Sequence record: OZ195934.1
Direction: 5' to 3' (one strand)
Length of the DNA: 64,000 bases
Shown here: piece after piece, positions 368-34,763 of the stretch
Layout: each line of letters begins with the position of its first letter
Position numbering within the stretch: the first letter of the stretch is position 1
Notes under the pieces: generated by a model
Database searches by the model: none
What the model saw: only the letters and a program-made list of their open reading frames with translations
Told to the model about the DNA's origin: nothing
Program-made: the position numbers and the translations under genes

Positions 368-1654
368 ATGGAGAGAAAACTTACAGATATTGTAAATGAT
401 GAAGCACTTGAATATGCAATGTACACAATCGAGAATCGAGCTTTAGCAAATGGCGTTGATGGTTTGAAACCAGTTCAACGCTTTGTGCTTTATAGCGTTC
501 TGCGCGACGCATCGACATCGTTTGATAAGGTAGCAGCACTCGGTAGCTCAGTTTCAAAGATTGGTTACAATCACGGTGAGACTTCAGCCCAAGACGCTCT
601 AGCGTTAATGGCAGCTAACTGGAAAAACAACTTGTCGATTGTTGAAGGGCGCGGTAACTTCGGTTCGCGAATGGTTCAAGAGCCCGCGAGTGCTCGTTAC
701 GTGTACGCGAAGCTGCACGAAAACTTCAAGCAATACTTCAAAGATATTCACCTTGCACCGGAACACAAAGACGTTGAACACGTCCCACCACAGTTCTACG
801 TGCCCGTGATACCGACAATTCTATTGAATGGCGTGTTCGGTGTTGCGACCGGCTTTGCGTGTAACATTCTACCGCACGATCCGAAATGGGTTAAGAAAGC
901 AGTTGTTGAATATCTCAGCGGCAAAGAAATCAGTGAGCCAGTGATCATGTATCCCGAGTTCAACGGTCGCGTTGAAAAGCTTGAGCATAACAAGTACGCA
1001 CAGATTGGTACAGTTGAGATTAGCGGTCTGACAGCAGTCGTTACAGAAGTTCCGACGACGTTCGATCACACAAAATATCTCGCAGTGCTTGACAAACTCA
1101 CAGAATCGGGTAAAATCAGTAGCTATGTTGATGAGACTAGCGAGACGTTTCAATTCAGAGTGCGTTGCAAGCGCGGGACGAAGATGGACGAAGCGAATAT
1201 CATCAAACTGTTAAAGCTTCAGTCTAATGCGACTCAGAACATCAACGTTATCGACGAGAACTATGAGATTCGTCATTTTAACGATGTCAGAGAGCTTGTG
1301 AAGTGGTTCGTTGACTACAGACTAACGTTCTTACCAACTCGCATCAAAGACGCGATACAGACGACTACAGCGCGTTCTAGTTTAGCGATTGCGAAAGCAT
1401 CGTTCATCAAAGACGTTGTTAGTGGTAGGATTGTATTGTTCGGTAAGAAGCGTGCTGAAGTTTCAAAAGAGCTGAAAGCAGACGAGCGATATTCACCGCA
1501 CGTAACTGAGCTTCTAAATATGTCGGTTGATAAAATGACCGACGATGAGATTGCAAAACTCGATAAAGACTCAGAATCAGCGTTGAAAGAACTCGATTAC
1601 TGGAATAAGACAACTCCGCAAAAAGAGTTTATCAAAGATCTAAAGGGTATATAA
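368..1654 (+). CDS. gp52: DNA topoisomerase II medium subunit (GyrA/ParC-like)
   Basis: DGLKPVQR, YNHGETS, GRGNFGSR and ARY active-site motifs. Confidence 0.95.
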   Translation: MERKLTDIVNDEALEYAMYTIENRALANGVDGLKPVQRFVLYSVLRDASTSFDKVAALGSSVSKIGYNHGETSAQDALALMAANWKNNLSIVEGRGNFGSRMVQEPASARYVYAKLHENFKQYFKDIHLAPEHKDVEHVPPQFYVPVIPTILLNGVFGVATGFACNILPHDPKWVKKAVVEYLSGKEISEPVIMYPEFNGRVEKLEHNKYAQIGTVEISGLTAVVTEVPTTFDHTKYLAVLDKLTESGKISSYVDETSETFQFRVRCKRGTKMDEANIIKLLKLQSNATQNINVIDENYEIRHFNDVRELVKWFVDYRLTFLPTRIKDAIQTTTARSSLAIAKASFIKDVVSGRIVLFGKKRAEVSKELKADERYSPHVTELLNMSVDKMTDDEIAKLDKDSESALKELDYWNKTTPQKEFIKDLKGI

Positions 1655-18611: not shown

Positions 18612-18636
18612 AAAAAAAGGACGCTATCTGCGTCCT
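18612..18636 (-). terminator. Rho-independent terminator
   Basis: AGGACGC-AGATA-GCGTCCT-T tract on minus strand. Confidence 0.8.
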
Positions 18637-19148
18637 TTAGTTTTGTTTCTTTTTAGTTTTCGTTTGAGCTTGCGAACTTCTTTACGCTTCGCGATTTTAT
18701 CAGCTCGTCGAACCGCGTCATAATCCGCAGCACAAGACGCTGCAAACGCATCGGGCTTGAATACTGGCTCTTGACCCACATATCCGAAGATCGTGCCCTT
18801 AGCTTCGTTATACGCGACGCTAGACTTGTGTTTAGGGTCTGGGTTAATGTCAACGTGTACTTCAAAGCCGCGAGGGCCGCACATTGGCTTAACTTTCAAC
18901 GCACATTCACCTGCTTTGTATACTTCGTTCATCAAGCGGCTACGAATACCATCAGTAGATGACATATAGGCTTTCTCAGTTTCGATTGTTTTGAATACTT
19001 GAGCGCCTTTACTGCCTTCCAAGTGAATTATGATTACAGTCGCGTAACTGATCATATCACTTTTTCGTTTACTGTCACACCCAACATAGATCGTGCTACT
19101 CGGGTGACTATTTTGAATCGCTGTTTCTACAGCTTCCCAATCGAACAT
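18624..19148 (-). CDS. YkuK/DUF458 RNase H-like protein
   Basis: IYVGCDS, YATVI, RLMNEV, VHVDIN, FKPDAFAASCAAD. Confidence 0.8.
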   Translation of the reverse strand: MFDWEAVETAIQNSHPSSTIYVGCDSKRKSDMISYATVIIIHLEGSKGAQVFKTIETEKAYMSSTDGIRSRLMNEVYKAGECALKVKPMCGPRGFEVHVDINPDPKHKSSVAYNEAKGTIFGYVGQEPVFKPDAFAASCAADYDAVRRADKIAKRKEVRKLKRKLKRNKTKGRR

Positions 19149-19197: not shown

Positions 19198-20631
19198 TTA
19201 TAAAGCGTATCGGTCGACACCGACAGTCTTCAGCATGATTTTCACTGGCTCAAGCTCACCACCCAACAGCGACGTTAGAATTGAAGGGCTGCAACCCGAC
19301 ACTAACGCTGTGTTCGCTTCACCTGATTTAACAGGCACGTTGTCTAGACGACCACGCAAGTTCCAGAACACTAGTTGCGGCATTTCGTAGCCCGCGTTCG
19401 CATACATGACTTTGATTGCATCGAAGTTCGTAGTGTTACGAGTATGCCAGCCACCGCCAGTACGAGCTTGATCGAATTCCATATCGCTCATGATAAGCAA
19501 TTTGGTTGGCATTTCGTCTTGCGACAAGTTTGCCGTACGAGCGCGTTCAAGAAGAACTTCGAAGCATCGTGTGATGTTCGTGCTCATATCTTCGCCAGAT
19601 CGTTGCATGTTGTCAAGACGCGACTTCAAGCTATCACCCGTCAACTTGTGAAAGTGCGGATCACTTGAGAACGAAATGAATTGATCTTTGAAGATACCCT
19701 CATTACGTTCAGCGACGTAGATGCCAAGAGACATCGCAACTTCTTTACAAGTCACACTACCACCGTGTTCACCGTTGATACCACAGCCCATAGAGCCAGA
19801 AACATCAACAACTGGAATCACGCGCTCGTCAGAGCCTTCCATGTAGTTCGGTAGAGCTTTCCATTGCTCATTTGCAACACGATGGTCACCCATTTTAACG
19901 CTGCGAACAACATCGTACGGGTAAACAGCACCTGCATTGATCTTCGCTTCACCTTTCACAAGCGATGTGATGTACTCACCGTATGCAGATTCAGCGTTAC
20001 GACCGAATGCTTTCTGATAGCGTGCAGACGCTACAGATGGCAGTTTGCCGAACTCGATCTCGTCCCAATTACGAGCACACATCTTCTGTTCAACAGTGTC
20101 AGACAAAAGAGAGATCACTTTACGCCACTGCTTCGCGTTTACACCAACCGACTTGATTGTGCGCTTGAACACGATAGCGTTTTTGCTGCGCTCACGAGGA
20201 AACCACTTAGCAGCAAGCGCGTTTTTGTCATTGACAATCGCGTGTGTCCACAGAGTGATAGCATCAGCTTCAAGAGAAGTACCGAACGCAGATACTAAGT
20301 CATCGAAACGACCAAGTTCTGGGATCTTGCGCATAACTAGACGCGCCACTTCTGGTTGTTCTTTACACAGACGTGCAAAGATTTTGCGGAAAGTACCGCG
20401 CTCACCTGCACCGCCACGCACGTCGCGAGACCATAGCAAGATGCGAGTTGCAAGCTCAGGGTTTTCACCGAATGCGCGATTAAACGCAGTTAGTGACTGA
20501 TCATTACCGCGCATAGCGCCGATAGTGAAGAACAAGTTTAGACACTCGTTACCCGAAGTGCTGTGTGTTACTGCACCGTTTGCTGTACGTGAATCGTTAG
20601 ATTGCATAGCGTTCATAAATAAACTAGTCAT
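19198..20631 (-). CDS. DUF2828 Ro60/TROVE-related protein with C-terminal vWA domain
   Basis: RDVRGGAGER, AAKWFPRE, VYPYDV, VVDVSGSM (MIDAS), SDMEFD, LVFWNL; GGAG SD before ATG 20631. Confidence 0.85.
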   Translation of the reverse strand: MTSLFMNAMQSNDSRTANGAVTHSTSGNECLNLFFTIGAMRGNDQSLTAFNRAFGENPELATRILLWSRDVRGGAGERGTFRKIFARLCKEQPEVARLVMRKIPELGRFDDLVSAFGTSLEADAITLWTHAIVNDKNALAAKWFPRERSKNAIVFKRTIKSVGVNAKQWRKVISLLSDTVEQKMCARNWDEIEFGKLPSVASARYQKAFGRNAESAYGEYITSLVKGEAKINAGAVYPYDVVRSVKMGDHRVANEQWKALPNYMEGSDERVIPVVDVSGSMGCGINGEHGGSVTCKEVAMSLGIYVAERNEGIFKDQFISFSSDPHFHKLTGDSLKSRLDNMQRSGEDMSTNITRCFEVLLERARTANLSQDEMPTKLLIMSDMEFDQARTGGGWHTRNTTNFDAIKVMYANAGYEMPQLVFWNLRGRLDNVPVKSGEANTALVSGCSPSILTSLLGGELEPVKIMLKTVGVDRYAL

Positions 20632-20667
20632 TGCTGTAAGCTCCAAATATCAAGGATCAGAAAAATA

Positions 20668-21258
20668 ATGTTTCATATTGTATATCAAATAACAAATTTA
20701 ATAAACAACAAAATTTACGTCGGTAAGCATTCAACCGAAAACATTCATGACGAATACATGGGTTCGGGAAAGCTTTTGCTCAGAGCCATTAAAAAGTATG
20801 GCAAGGAGAATTTCACAAAAGACATACTGTTCGTATCATTAGACGAAAAGGATGCATATAAAGCAGAACATGAGATCGTGAATGAAGATTTTGTTCTCCG
20901 TGAAGACACATATAATCTCAAAGTTGGCGGTCTTGGTGGATCATCAGGAATAGAATCTCCATGCAAAGGTCGTCAACTGAGTGAAGATACTAAACTAAAA
21001 ATGAGAAAAAGTAAACAATTTTCTCAAAAACATTTAGATTATCTCTCAACTAAATTATCTGAGTACAACAAATCTAGACAAGGTGTTCAAAGAGACGATC
21101 TAAAGGGTAACTCAAACCCAATGCATCGAGGTAATTGGCATACACCCCACGGAATATTTGAAACATCAAGCGAAGCAGCGTGTGCCATAAAATGTAGTCA
21201 ATCAACAATTGTTAGACGTTGCAAAAATCCAAATTTTGAGGATTGGTACATCAAATAA
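20668..21258 (+). mobile_element. Free-standing GIY-YIG (Seg-like) homing endonuclease
   Basis: IVYQITNLINNKIYVGKH, YMGSG, YNL; AT-rich, antisense to neighbours. Confidence 0.88.
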
Positions 21259-30985: not shown

Positions 30986-31100
30986 TGGCTGACCGATGCG
31001 GGACTCGAACCCACGACCACGTGCTTAACAGGCAATTAGAAATGCGGTAGCGATACTTATCAATATCATTTACGTGCTCTACCACTGAGCTAATCGGTCA
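30986..31100 (-). ncRNA. tRNA-Asn(GTT)-like RNA with 38-nt insertion after nt 28
   Basis: Removing 31035-31072 restores CGTGC-CTGTTAA-GCACG arm; 8-bp acceptor, G73, CCA. Confidence 0.8.
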
Positions 31101-33005: not shown

Positions 33006-33128
33006 TGGTGGAGAGTGCGGGATTCGAACCACGCGGCCAAAAGATTTACTTAGTTAGTGTTTGCAGCATGAATACTTGACAATATTCTGTCAACGTTCTT
33101 TTGCTCTACCAGACTGAGCTAACTCTCC
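33006..33128 (-). ncRNA. tRNA-Tyr(GTA)-like RNA with ~45-nt insertion in anticodon loop
   Basis: Canonical acceptor, D and T arms; AAAGA/TCTTT stem enclosing 52 nt that end AAGTAAA. Confidence 0.8.
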
Positions 33129-33140
33129 ATTTAAAACACA

Positions 33141-33264
33141 TTGAGCAGGGTGCAGGATTCGAACCTGCGTCACGATCTTAGAATGATATGCTGTTTGGGT
33201 TGCTGAATACAAGCTATACAACTTGCGTTTATGCTACGTGTGCTAGCCACTACACCAACCCTGC
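33141..33264 (-). ncRNA. tRNA-Arg(TCT)-like RNA with 49-nt insertion after nt 28
   Basis: Removing 33188-33236 gives CGATC-ATTCTAA-GATCG; ends CAA; 17-bp flanking IR. Confidence 0.8.
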
Positions 33265-33517
33265 TCAATGTGTTCTAGTGCAATGCCATATGAACTCACA
33301 TGGCATCACTGAACCTGTTTTATATTGCCTTAGCTAACCAACACAATCTGAAATCGTGCGCTTTAATAAAGGGAGGGCGTCCCTCTTCGCCAGTTAGCAT
33401 AGATGTGTTGCTATGCACCCATTTGTCAATCATGTCCAAGGCAAACAGAACAATGAATACGAGTGCGAGAAGATATACAATCAAATTGAAACACCTCGCT
33501 AAAAAGTTAGAGCATAT

Positions 33518-33639
33518 TGGTCGTGCGTACTAGAATCGAACTAGTCCTACGATCTCCTAATGATATGCGTTATTGGTTGCTGAATACTTACTTGTCAGTA
33601 AGCGTTATGCTACGTGTGCTGCCACTACACCAACGCACG
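33518..33639 (-). ncRNA. tRNA-Leu(TAG)-like RNA with 48-nt insertion after nt 28
   Basis: Removing 33565-33612 gives CGATC-ATTAGGA-GATCG; ACCA end; 21-bp perfect flanking IR. Confidence 0.8.
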
Positions 33640-33654
33640 ACCAATATGCTCTAG

Positions 33655-33921: not shown

Positions 33922-34046
33922 ATCTTAGCAGCTTTTTCGCTGAAGTCAAACACTTTTTTCAAATTTCTTTCATCGAATCAAGAGTTTGTGTTGCTGTCTC
34001 TCGACTCGATGAAATACATTCTACAGGAAAACAAAGCGAAGTCAAC
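33922..34046 (-). promoter_or_regulatory. Two tandem early promoters heading the ncRNA array
   Basis: TTTGAC-17-TAAGAT (33922-33950) and GTTGAC-17-TAGAAT (34018-34046). Confidence 0.75.
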
Positions 34047-34063: not shown

Positions 34064-34315
34064 TTACGATTGAATGATAATACCGCTTTCCGTCTCACCG
34101 CGCTCAAGAGCTGCGTGCTTAATCTGTAGTTGTGCTACTGCTTGTTGAAGTTCTGTGATCGTCTGATCATATAGCTTCATGTTGCTTTGCATGTGTTTAA
34201 TCTGATCGCTCTGCAAACCAACGATATAGGTAAGCAAGATGATGCTTTCATTATCTTGCAGTTCTTCACCGTCGTTGTATTTCTTCAGAACAGATTGGAT
34301 TGTAATATCAGCCAT
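34064..34315 (-). CDS. Coiled-coil hypothetical protein
   Basis: ORF from MADITIQ. Confidence 0.6.
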   Translation of the reverse strand: MADITIQSVLKKYNDGEELQDNESIILLTYIVGLQSDQIKHMQSNMKLYDQTITELQQAVAQLQIKHAALERGETESGIIIQS

Positions 34316-34763
34316 TGTTTTCAGCCCATGACAAATCGAGTGGTTCAACGTATTCGTCTACAAGTCGAACTTCGGCTTCGACGAACAAGGGAGTGATTGC
34401 ATCGTCATACGAAAGCGTGACGTGCGGAGTATAGTCAGGGTAATCGTGAGTACCACCGATAGAGATAAGGTCTTCATGACGCGCTACAAGCTCAGGACAT
34501 TTCATCTTCGCAACAACTGCGTGATTACCGTCTTGAGTTTTCCAGCAATCGATATACTCAATAGTTGCTACGAATGTCGTATCAACGGCAGGCACATCAA
34601 TTTGATTGCGACTGTATAGAACAGTGACGTGAAATTTATCTGGATCTAAAGGATTTGCTAGACGAAGCGATGTCTGCAAGCGAACTAACTCTTGTTTACT
34701 CGATTCGTCTAGTTTGATACCAACGTACGTCCCCTGACTTTCAAGGAACGTAGATAGTTTCAT
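34308..34763 (-). CDS. acb1: 2H phosphoesterase, T4 57B / anti-CBASS Acb1 family
   Basis: Two HxT motifs (FHVTVLYSR, PHVTLSY); synteny 57B-57A-1-3. Confidence 0.85.
   Translation of the reverse strand: MKLSTFLESQGTYVGIKLDESSKQELVRLQTSLRLANPLDPDKFHVTVLYSRNQIDVPAVDTTFVATIEYIDCWKTQDGNHAVVAKMKCPELVARHEDLISIGGTHDYPDYTPHVTLSYDDAITPLFVEAEVRLVDEYVEPLDLSWAENNG

Follow-up and report, generated by a model that had tools for sequence, protein, structure and literature searches.

YrlA RNAs mimic tRNA, are encoded on the strand of a Ro60 gene and no more than 4 kb from it, and occur in 22 phages (Chen et al. 2014, PMC4201824). Deinococcus Yrn1 keeps the tRNA order and has a T arm and an anticodon-like arm (PMC4201824), and the Ro60 of Thermus phage phiLo binds the adjacent Y-like RNAs Yrl1 and Yrl2 as well as host polynucleotide phosphorylase (PNPase) (PMC12135203). 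Both tRNA-mimicking Y RNAs and phage homologues of Ro60 are already known. Our subject is a pair of oversized tRNA-like genes, elements B and A, in a stretch of 64,000 nucleotides (nt) from sequence record OZ195934.1, hereafter the window. On balance we favour the view that both encode stable non-coding tRNA mimics, acting as Y-RNA-like partners of a Ro60-like DUF2828/DUF7788 protein of the same phage, and that the module inserted into each is a putative docking site.

The window comes from a Vibrio phage of the KVP40-like group (Schizotequatrovirus). Two Vibrio phages, D482 and 6E35.1a, match the region at 100% identity, and KVP40, phi-Grn1, F86, V05, CZ01, VS1, V07 and VH7D match it at 75-84%. 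Elements B and A and the features discussed with them lie on the minus strand, with transcription running from high to low window coordinates. Element B has the following parts, listed in the direction of transcription.

33508..33653, minus strand: element B, the whole 146-nt tRNA-like RNA including a terminal helix of 21 base pairs (bp), defined by folding, the inverted repeat and covariance model R1
33633..33653, minus strand: 5' strand of the terminal helix, a 14-nt leader extension followed by the 7-nt 5' strand of the acceptor, with compensatory changes among Vibrio-phage orthologues
33616..33630, minus strand: D arm GUGU / AGUGGCA / GCAC with a canonical loop (A14, G18G19, A21), from alignment with relatives
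33565..33612, minus strand: 48-nt insertion between tRNA nt 28 and 29, starting UAGCA and ending CGCAU
33587..33602, minus strand: insertion hairpin (arm X) CUUACU-GACA-AGUAAG, helix 5 of the model, with both-side changes in 8 of 9 pairs
33575..33584, minus strand: UUCAGCAACC motif immediately 3' of the hairpin; a helix followed by CAGCAA is a signature common to RNAs adjoining other phage Ro-like genes
33552..33564, minus strand: anticodon-like arm AUC / AUUAGGA / GAU, stacked on C27-G43 and G28-C42
33529..33545, minus strand: T arm ACUAG / UUCGAUU / CUAGU, from folding and the covariation alignment
33508..33528, minus strand: 3' strand of the terminal helix, comprising the acceptor 3' strand, A73 and an encoded CCA (33518-33520) paired to the leader, from sequence and pairing

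Apart from the insertion, the body is that of a tRNA. It has a 7-bp acceptor, U8, G9 and A26, an upper anticodon stem of C27-G43 and G28-C42 with the insertion after nt 28, a lower anticodon stem of three pairs (AUC/GAU) closing a 7-nt loop, a 4-nt variable region (UAGG), a standard T arm with a UUCGAUU loop, and the acceptor 3' strand followed by the discriminator. The insertion runs UAGCA, spacer, hairpin of 6-7 bp, UAUUCAGCAACC, A/U-rich linker, CGCAU. The whole RNA folds at -56.1 kcal/mol (z = -6.9 against shuffled sequences), and its core (33521-33639) scores 122 bits with R1. The register was fixed by aligning B and A with their relatives. GUGU/GCAC is favoured over GUGU/ACAC for the D stem because pair 12-23 changes from G-C to C-G or U-A in relatives. 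A first structural reading, with a GUGU/ACAC D stem and G26 and with the hairpin arm taken as the anticodon arm, was dropped, since one relative, which has GUCU...GGAC, can pair in no register but GUGU/GCAC, and since a continuous 5-bp anticodon stem then forms in all 43 family members described below. In B and A this full stem (continuous CG + AUC / GAU + CG) closes a loop of 7 nt.

The second element stands a short way downstream.

33132..33277, minus strand: element A, paralogue of B on the same scaffold, from alignment; 119.7 bits with R1

Its insertion, of 49 nt (33188-33236), also falls between tRNA positions 28 and 29. The hairpin is CAAGUU-GUAU-AGCUUG and the anticodon-like loop AUUCUAA, where B has AUUAGGA; the acceptor and T stems are unlike in the two, yet paired in both. 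A sequence-only reading of the window had already proposed that A and B are paralogues on one scaffold, that B carries a 48-nt insertion within a perfect 21-bp inverted repeat, and that the insertion hairpins are swapped for different perfect stems while the acceptor, the T stem and the anticodon (TAG versus TCT) differ. Alignment of the shared blocks bears out the paralogy, and the other features are all present in the sequence. The repeat pairs 33508-33528 with 33633-33653 and extends imperfectly to 28 nt; we estimate that a perfect 21-bp repeat within 200 nt would be expected by chance about 3e-6 times per 64 kb. The terminal helix of A is 20 bp long, the 7-bp acceptor plus 13 bp that include G-U pairs. 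Pairing of leader and trailer thus adds 14 bp to the acceptor helix of B and 13 bp to that of A, and such an extension is present in all Vibrio-phage orthologues, with compensatory substitutions. These extensions (33640-33653, 33265-33277 and their orthologues) also share, beyond the pairing, the sequence CAYAUUG across paralogues and species, which suggests a sequence-specific processing or binding site, RNase III being one candidate.

Two further genes nearby are built on related lines.

33009..33128, minus strand: third insert-bearing tRNA-like gene, with a 52-nt insert inside the anticodon stem, a hairpin followed by GUAUUCAUGCUGCAAAC; homologue of KVP40 tRNA-Pseudo-4
30990..31099, minus strand: fourth insert-bearing tRNA-like gene, with a 49-nt insert inside the anticodon stem, a hairpin followed by GUAUCGCUACCGCA; homologue of KVP40 tRNA-Pseudo-3; 55.8 bits with R1

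Rfam calls both of these tRNA; in each, a module of this kind has probably been placed in another tRNA body.

In all eight KVP40-like phages examined, nhmmer finds an A-type and a B-type copy, one of each, which makes the duplication old and removes the objection that the two might be recent neutral duplicates. The hairpin of the F86 B copy is nearly that of the window's A, which indicates that hairpins have moved between paralogues. We looked for more distant relatives with pattern scans of IMG/VR and Joint Genome Institute (JGI) metagenomes, in which about half the metagenome matches were coding-sequence false positives, and then with R1. This gave 50 strong hits, 43 of them distinct, from Vibrio phages and from unrelated uncultured (metagenomic) phages, all of which fit one model. 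Every one of the 43 has an insertion, of 39-58 nt, at the identical site, and in every one the three lower anticodon-stem pairs form, as AUC/GAU, GAA/UUC, UGA/UCA or AGA/UCU. No locus examined holds an insertion-free copy of the tRNA body.

Selection on structure, which the sequence-only reading had argued from two copies, is strongly supported by this wider alignment. Paired cells make up 94.7%, against 67.5% when shuffled, both sides change in 24 of 33 pairs, and the covariation score is 0.66 against 0.16 for shuffled and 0.08-0.13 for slid controls; the alignment was fitted to the model, which somewhat favours the structure, but the margin is large. The insertion is conserved in sequence as well as in structure across very distant phages, its general order being UAGCA, a variable hairpin, UUCAGCAAC, an A/U-rich linker and a closing GCAU. 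The extended terminal helix is confined to Vibrio phages; the insertion is the feature kept across the whole family. A short-insert group has UUACCA or UUACAA variants in place of CAGCAA. Many metagenomic members combine a UGG/G37 loop with G72/A73, and this suggests that the family descends from a tRNA-Pro-like ancestor.

Two rumen phage contigs, of 148 and 208 kb (L016 and L017), carry three tandem family members inside a large tRNA cluster with a transfer-messenger RNA gene. Only three open reading frames (ORFs) of at least 100 amino acids (aa) occur there in 10.8 kb under code 11, a hint of an alternative genetic code. A separate pattern scan, ACACGTAGC...CAGCAA...GGTTCRA, mostly returned another insert-bearing tRNA (L018-L020) and one coding false positive, and was set aside. 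That gene (L018 1381-1499, L019 7499-7617, L020 2449-2567) is an unrelated phage tRNA with a structured insert of ~45 nt in the anticodon region, so oversized tRNA genes are a broader phage phenomenon.

The proposed protein partner is also encoded in the window.

19198-20646, minus strand: Ro60-fold protein of 482 aa, Pfam DUF2828 + DUF7788, phrog_850 'RNA-binding protein'

An AlphaFold2 model of this protein, from 37 homologues, reached a predicted local distance difference test score (pLDDT) of 80 and a predicted template modelling score (pTM) of 0.79. The top 11 Foldseek matches of the model in the PDB are all Ro60/TROVE proteins, aligned over the full length with E-values of 5e-9 to 3e-6 and template modelling (TM) scores from 0.40 (Rsr) to 0.62; they include the Ro60 of Thermus phage phiLo, Deinococcus Rsr, and Xenopus Ro60 bound to Y RNA or misfolded RNA. 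The model has the architecture of that family, a ring of helical repeats followed by a vWA domain with the DxSxS motif of a MIDAS (an adhesion site that depends on metal ions), here an invariant DVSGSM. On this structural evidence the DUF2828/DUF7788 protein is predicted to have a Ro60 fold. Sequence searches of the PDB with phmmer and hmmsearch gave no Ro60 match, and Pfam reports only DUF2828 and DUF7788, without TROVE, so the relationship is visible only by fold comparison.

By tblastn, homologues of the protein occur in 711 phage records, among them mycobacteriophages, Felixounaviruses, Listeria, Staphylococcus, Campylobacter and Aeromonas phages, and Lak-B5. The mycobacteriophage proteins, 30-34% identical to it, are annotated 'Ro-like RNA binding protein'. 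Immediately downstream of the window's Ro-like gene lies an RNaseH_like (PF04308) gene (18624-19148, minus strand), and the order DUF2828 then RNaseH_like recurs in loci L074 and L075; a functional link between the two genes is possible.

At least four further phage lineages have family RNAs on the same strand as the gene of a DUF2828 homologue, or of a probable distant relative, and 0.1-3 kb downstream of it. These and a related arrangement in a Felixounavirus are as follows.

L012: 452-aa DUF2828 protein, 43% identical to the window's, upstream on the same strand, ~130 nt from the family RNA
L031: 560-aa DUF7788/phrog_850 protein upstream on the same strand, ~150 nt from the family RNA, on a contig without ordinary tRNA
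L014/L047, L022, L025, L026, L032, L059 and L068: 607-646-aa vWA protein upstream on the same strand, at 0.3-1.1 kb, with arrays of 2-4 insert-bearing tRNA-like RNAs
L041: 475-aa phrog_850 relative upstream on the same strand, 3 kb from the family RNA
Aeromonas phage PX29: DUF2828 gene upstream on the same strand, at 2.2-2.6 kb, with three tandem family members
Felixounavirus BPS17L1: DUF2828 gene ending 166 nt before a tRNA cluster

The RNAs of L012, L031, L014, L022, L025, L026, L032, L059, L068, L041 and PX29 lie within about 4 kb of such a gene and on its strand, as YrlA RNAs do with Ro60 genes. The proteins of 607-646 aa have a DDSGSM vWA motif, align to the DUF2828 group with 72% probability in hhalign and match phrog_850 at E 2e-4. 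The best Foldseek match of their model is Deinococcus Rsr (E 3e-4) at a pTM of only 0.55, so their link to Ro60 is weaker; the 607-aa protein had no tblastn match among isolate phages. A connection between the window's RNAs and DUF2828 had been a guess when only the letters were read, and the Ro60 fold, together with relatives directly downstream of homologues in other phages, now gives it real support.

The closest bridge to YrlA is found in locus L012.

L012 1318-1457, minus strand: circularly permuted family member, directly downstream of the DUF2828 gene

In this RNA the 3' half precedes the 5' half, a 10-nt loop between them closes the acceptor stem, and both termini fall within the insertion hairpin. 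Its predicted fold has the same layout as an RNA of mycobacteriophage Krypton555 that occupies the gap following the Ro-like gene and partially matches Rfam YrlA (38 bits, E 3e-5). Both run terminal stem, single strand starting CAGCAA, arm, T arm, closed acceptor-like hairpin, D arm, terminal stem. In both, the stem equivalent to the insertion hairpin is made by the RNA's own termini, with CAGCAA directly after its 5' strand. Because of this shared layout, A and B of the window look like the unpermuted form of the YrlA design. Their insertion hairpin looks like the counterpart of the terminal, Ro-side stem of YrlA, and their extended acceptor like that of its closed 'AS' hairpin. L012 also has mini-elements (~940-1120, minus strand) in which (U)ACAGCAAACC accompanies either a T arm or an entire tRNA that a stem encloses.

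A helix strand followed immediately by (U)(U/A)CAGCAA occurs in A, in B, in rumen members (UUACAGCAAU) and in PX29 (UUUACAGCAAGCC). The same arrangement is present three times in the YrlA-like region of Krypton555 and twice at the start of a conserved RNA of ~390 nt. The CAGCAA hexamer itself is enriched 2.2-fold in the 1.5 kb downstream of Ro-like genes (p = 8e-4). The ~390-nt RNA was found in the DUF2828 neighbourhoods L072-L079, which hold this different conserved RNA and no R1-family RNA.

L072 11788-12180; L077 6440-6830; L078; L079 6450-6835: ~390-nt conserved non-coding RNA directly after DUF2828 genes of marine and freshwater T4-like phages

It starts GGUUCC-UUACAGCAA...GGAACC, continues with GUAC-AGCAAAAA-GUAC and has an intrinsic terminator at its end. 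No Rfam family matches it, and we regard it as a candidate for a second class of Ro-like partner RNA.

Set beside YrlA (RF02553), the window's RNAs are alike in having an acceptor-like stem and D and T arms of tRNA type, connected to a distinct stem that would dock the protein; several of their relatives also resemble YrlA in lying close to a Ro60-type gene on the same strand. The permuted L012 copy goes further, sharing both the topology of the mycobacteriophage YrlA-like RNA and the CAGCAA after the 5' strand of the terminal stem. The window's RNAs differ from YrlA in keeping the normal 5'-to-3' tRNA order, with the acceptor ends open and extended, and in retaining the anticodon-like arm; where YrlA has its docking stem, they have a closed hairpin set into the body at nt 28/29.

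A and B resemble Deinococcus Yrn1 and metazoan Y RNAs in forming a long helix from their 5' and 3' ends, and the UGGUCG in the stem of B recalls the Ro-binding sequence GGUCCGA, a lead only. The family-wide conserved feature of A, B and their relatives is the insertion, not the terminal helix. PhiLo provides a phage-encoded Ro60 fold that is the best structural match to the window's protein, at a sequence identity of only ~15%, but its Yrl1 and Yrl2, encoded directly upstream of the gene, have a stem-bulge-stem form, and no tRNA shape is described for them (PMC12135203).

Members of this widespread phage family are usually found beside the gene of a Ro60-like RNA-binding protein, and it therefore seems probable that B is the partner RNA of the Ro-like protein, a phage 'Y RNA'. 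The inserted module of hairpin and CAGCAA may then dock the Ro-like ring, while the tRNA-like body would give stability and recruit factors that handle tRNA. By analogy with Ro60-Y RNA-PNPase complexes, such a ribonucleoprotein (RNP) could act on the metabolism of tRNA or other structured RNAs during infection. It might do so by tethering Ro to PNPase or to tRNA-handling enzymes, much as in the phiLo Ro60-Yrl-PNPase assembly (PMC12135203). The family would in that case be the unpermuted counterpart of YrlA.

Several observations weigh against this interpretation. In the window itself the Ro-like gene, though encoded on their strand, is separated from A and B by 12.5 kb, with the tRNA cluster in between; it lies downstream of them and beyond the 4 kb of YrlA. 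Rumen huge-phage loci have no Ro-like gene within the span of up to 11 kb examined, Lak-B5 has neither a tRNA nor a family RNA within 12 kb of its DUF2828 homologue, and the DUF2828 genes of L074 and L075 have no family RNA directly downstream. DUF2828 genes in general tend to be near tRNA clusters, and this could yield some of the linkage without direct interaction. The enrichment of CAGCAA is modest, and the short-insert group bears UUACCA variants instead. Neither the Y_RNA nor the YrlA model of Rfam scores B. The sole YrlA match (33070-33196, 28.2 bits against a gathering score of 69) was rejected as a chimera of the T arm of A and the D arm of the next gene, with the stems unpaired. The published Ro-binding motif GNCGAAN0-1G is absent from B, which has GUCGUGCG where the KVP40 copy has GUCGAGUG, and its perfect terminal helix lacks the bulges that metazoan Ro60 requires.

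The sequence-only reading had named B tRNA-Leu(TAG)-like, and an identity as tRNA-Leu(TAG) is not supported. Bacterial tRNA-Leu is a class II tRNA with a long variable arm, and the variable region of B has 4 nt. The anticodon-like loop also differs among orthologues. Among B copies AUUAGGA is limited to the window's group and F86, while orthologues of the KVP40 group have AUAGGGA; for A it is AUUCUAA, AUUCAUAA, AUUUCCAA or AUUUCAA, with lengths of 7 to 8 nt, and some relatives have C or A, not U, at position 33. B is most likely neither a working tRNA-Leu nor a dead pseudogene.

The main rival, although we think it unlikely, is that A and B are intron-containing tRNA genes, whose 48-nt intervening sequence is removed by a nuclease and a phage or host RNA ligase to give working tRNAs; the Ro-like protein could even assist that processing. 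Intact, neither B nor A is called a tRNA by ARAGORN, or by the Rfam tRNA model (RF00005) even at E <= 10, but when the insertion is removed in silico ARAGORN calls flawless cloverleaves with anticodons tag (B) and tct (A). B encodes A73-CCA, the lower anticodon stem is always paired, the loop is usually N-U-NNN-R-N, and near-repeats of UAGCA flank the insertion and could mark two cleavage sites. Against this, we know of no bacterial or phage machinery for introns so short. Insertion at 28/29, in the stem's 5' strand, does not agree with a group I intron, for which the anticodon loop would be expected, and no self-splicing or self-cleaving ribozyme family was found in B or A by Rfam at E <= 10. 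Nor is there an archaeal-type bulge-helix-bulge, since on inspection of the model both ends of the insertion emerge from one strand, at a single position in an unbroken helix.

Precedent for oversized genes of this kind does exist. The 'enigmatic introns' of Lak megaphages and other huge phages are short intervening sequences in oversized, highly conserved tRNA genes with no known splicing route (Devoto et al., bioRxiv 10.1101/356790), and are likened to the window's family by description only; Lak-B5 does encode a DUF2828 homologue. The PX29 copy is annotated as a two-piece tRNA-Leu. However, no locus examined has an intron-free allele, the anticodon is not kept among orthologues, the 8-nt loops and the variable position 33 do not suit a working tRNA, and the window already carries normal tRNA-Leu(UAG) and tRNA-Arg(UCU) genes. 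Conservation of the insertion sequence itself across very distant phages also counts against removal. The leader-trailer helix of 20-21 bp and the permuted copy in L012 are easier to reconcile with a stable structured RNA than with a precursor.

It is less likely again, in our judgement an improbable reading, that the RNAs work on their own, independently of Ro, as decoys or sponges that occupy anticodon nucleases or tRNA-modifying enzymes of the host, with the anticodon-like arm as bait and the insertion keeping the RNA off the ribosome. The fast evolution of anticodon-like loops on a strongly conserved scaffold is what an arms race would produce. The RNAs also lie in an early-region tRNA cluster adjoining the anti-CBASS (cyclic-oligonucleotide-based antiphage signalling system) gene acb1, and phage tRNAs are known to counter tRNA-targeting defences. 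The variation of the loops fits relaxed constraint equally well, though, no cognate nuclease has been identified, and the conserved insertion sequence and its recurrence beside Ro-like genes are left unexplained. The readings are not fully exclusive, as a Ro-RNP could itself be the decoy. Decay of tRNA genes disrupted by a small repeat element, the implication of the KVP40 annotation (which labels the neighbouring insert-bearing homologues tRNA-Pseudo-3/4/5 and leaves its own A and B homologues unannotated) and of the failure of standard tRNA finders to detect A and B, deserves almost no weight, being contradicted by the covariation, by compensatory substitutions in all helices of two copies kept in every KVP40-like phage, and by relatives in unrelated phages with identical insertion point and motifs.

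We return to A and B as proposed Y-RNA-like partners of the Ro-like protein. A wider proposal, possible rather than probable and offered tentatively, is that the short 'introns' to which many phage tRNA genes owe their excess length are no introns but a portable docking module, a hairpin with a CAGCAA-type tail, for the DUF2828/phrog_850 Ro60-like protein encoded by more than 700 sequenced phages. Module and protein together would form a tRNA-scaffolded Y-RNA RNP of which the YrlA of bacteria and mycobacteriophages is the circularly permuted form, and this would control turnover of tRNA or structured RNA or blunt tRNA-targeting defences. In a literature search we found no prior link between oversized 'pseudo' or 'intron-containing' phage tRNA genes and DUF2828 or Ro-like proteins, and no earlier description of an unpermuted, insertion-bearing architecture.

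If the proposal is right, genes annotated as 'pseudo-tRNAs' since the KVP40 genome of 2003 would have a function, at least some unexplained phage tRNA 'introns' would have a testable explanation, and the large DUF2828 family would be tied to Ro60 biology through a defined RNA partner. A Y RNA could then be built from an ordinary tRNA by one inserted module, with YrlA as a permuted form, and phages such as the KVP40-like phages on Vibrio natriegens would offer an accessible system for the role of Ro60-Y RNA particles in bacteria and animals.

T4-type phages have another pair of RNAs that invites comparison. T4 rnaC and rnaD (species 1 and 2) are stable RNAs of 119-139 nt, of unknown function, inside the tRNA cluster, and rnaC has a tRNA-like T arm and 3' half. 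They sit at the distal end of their cluster, unlike A and B, and a search of the T4 locus with nhmmer and the covariance model detected no homology; to our knowledge T4 has no DUF2828 gene. T4 rnaC (L003 1909-2047) contains GAGUAGCGU twice, whose GUAGC resembles the invariant CGUAGC that opens the insertion, a likeness that may be coincidence.

Along the direction of transcription the window's locus runs from acb1/57B through a promoter-like intergenic region to B, a small ORF, A, the two further oversized tRNA-like genes and then 26 ordinary tRNA genes, which span 32622 down to 25095. The neighbours of B and A are these.

34308-34763, minus strand: acb1/57B, just upstream of the tRNA-like cluster, a homologue of T4 57B that matches Pfam Acb1 (E 1e-44), the anti-CBASS 2H phosphoesterase
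33922..34045, minus strand: two sigma-70-like promoter matches upstream of B, TTGACT-16-TAGAAT and TTGACT-16-TAAGAT, which are consensus matches only
33320-33484, minus strand: small hydrophobic ORF of 54 aa between B and A, conserved in KVP40 (KVP40.0319)

Small hydrophobic ORFs also flank the L012 RNA on either side, like the one between B and A. A GIY-YIG SegE-like homing endonuclease gene (20668-21258, plus strand) adjoins the Ro-like gene.

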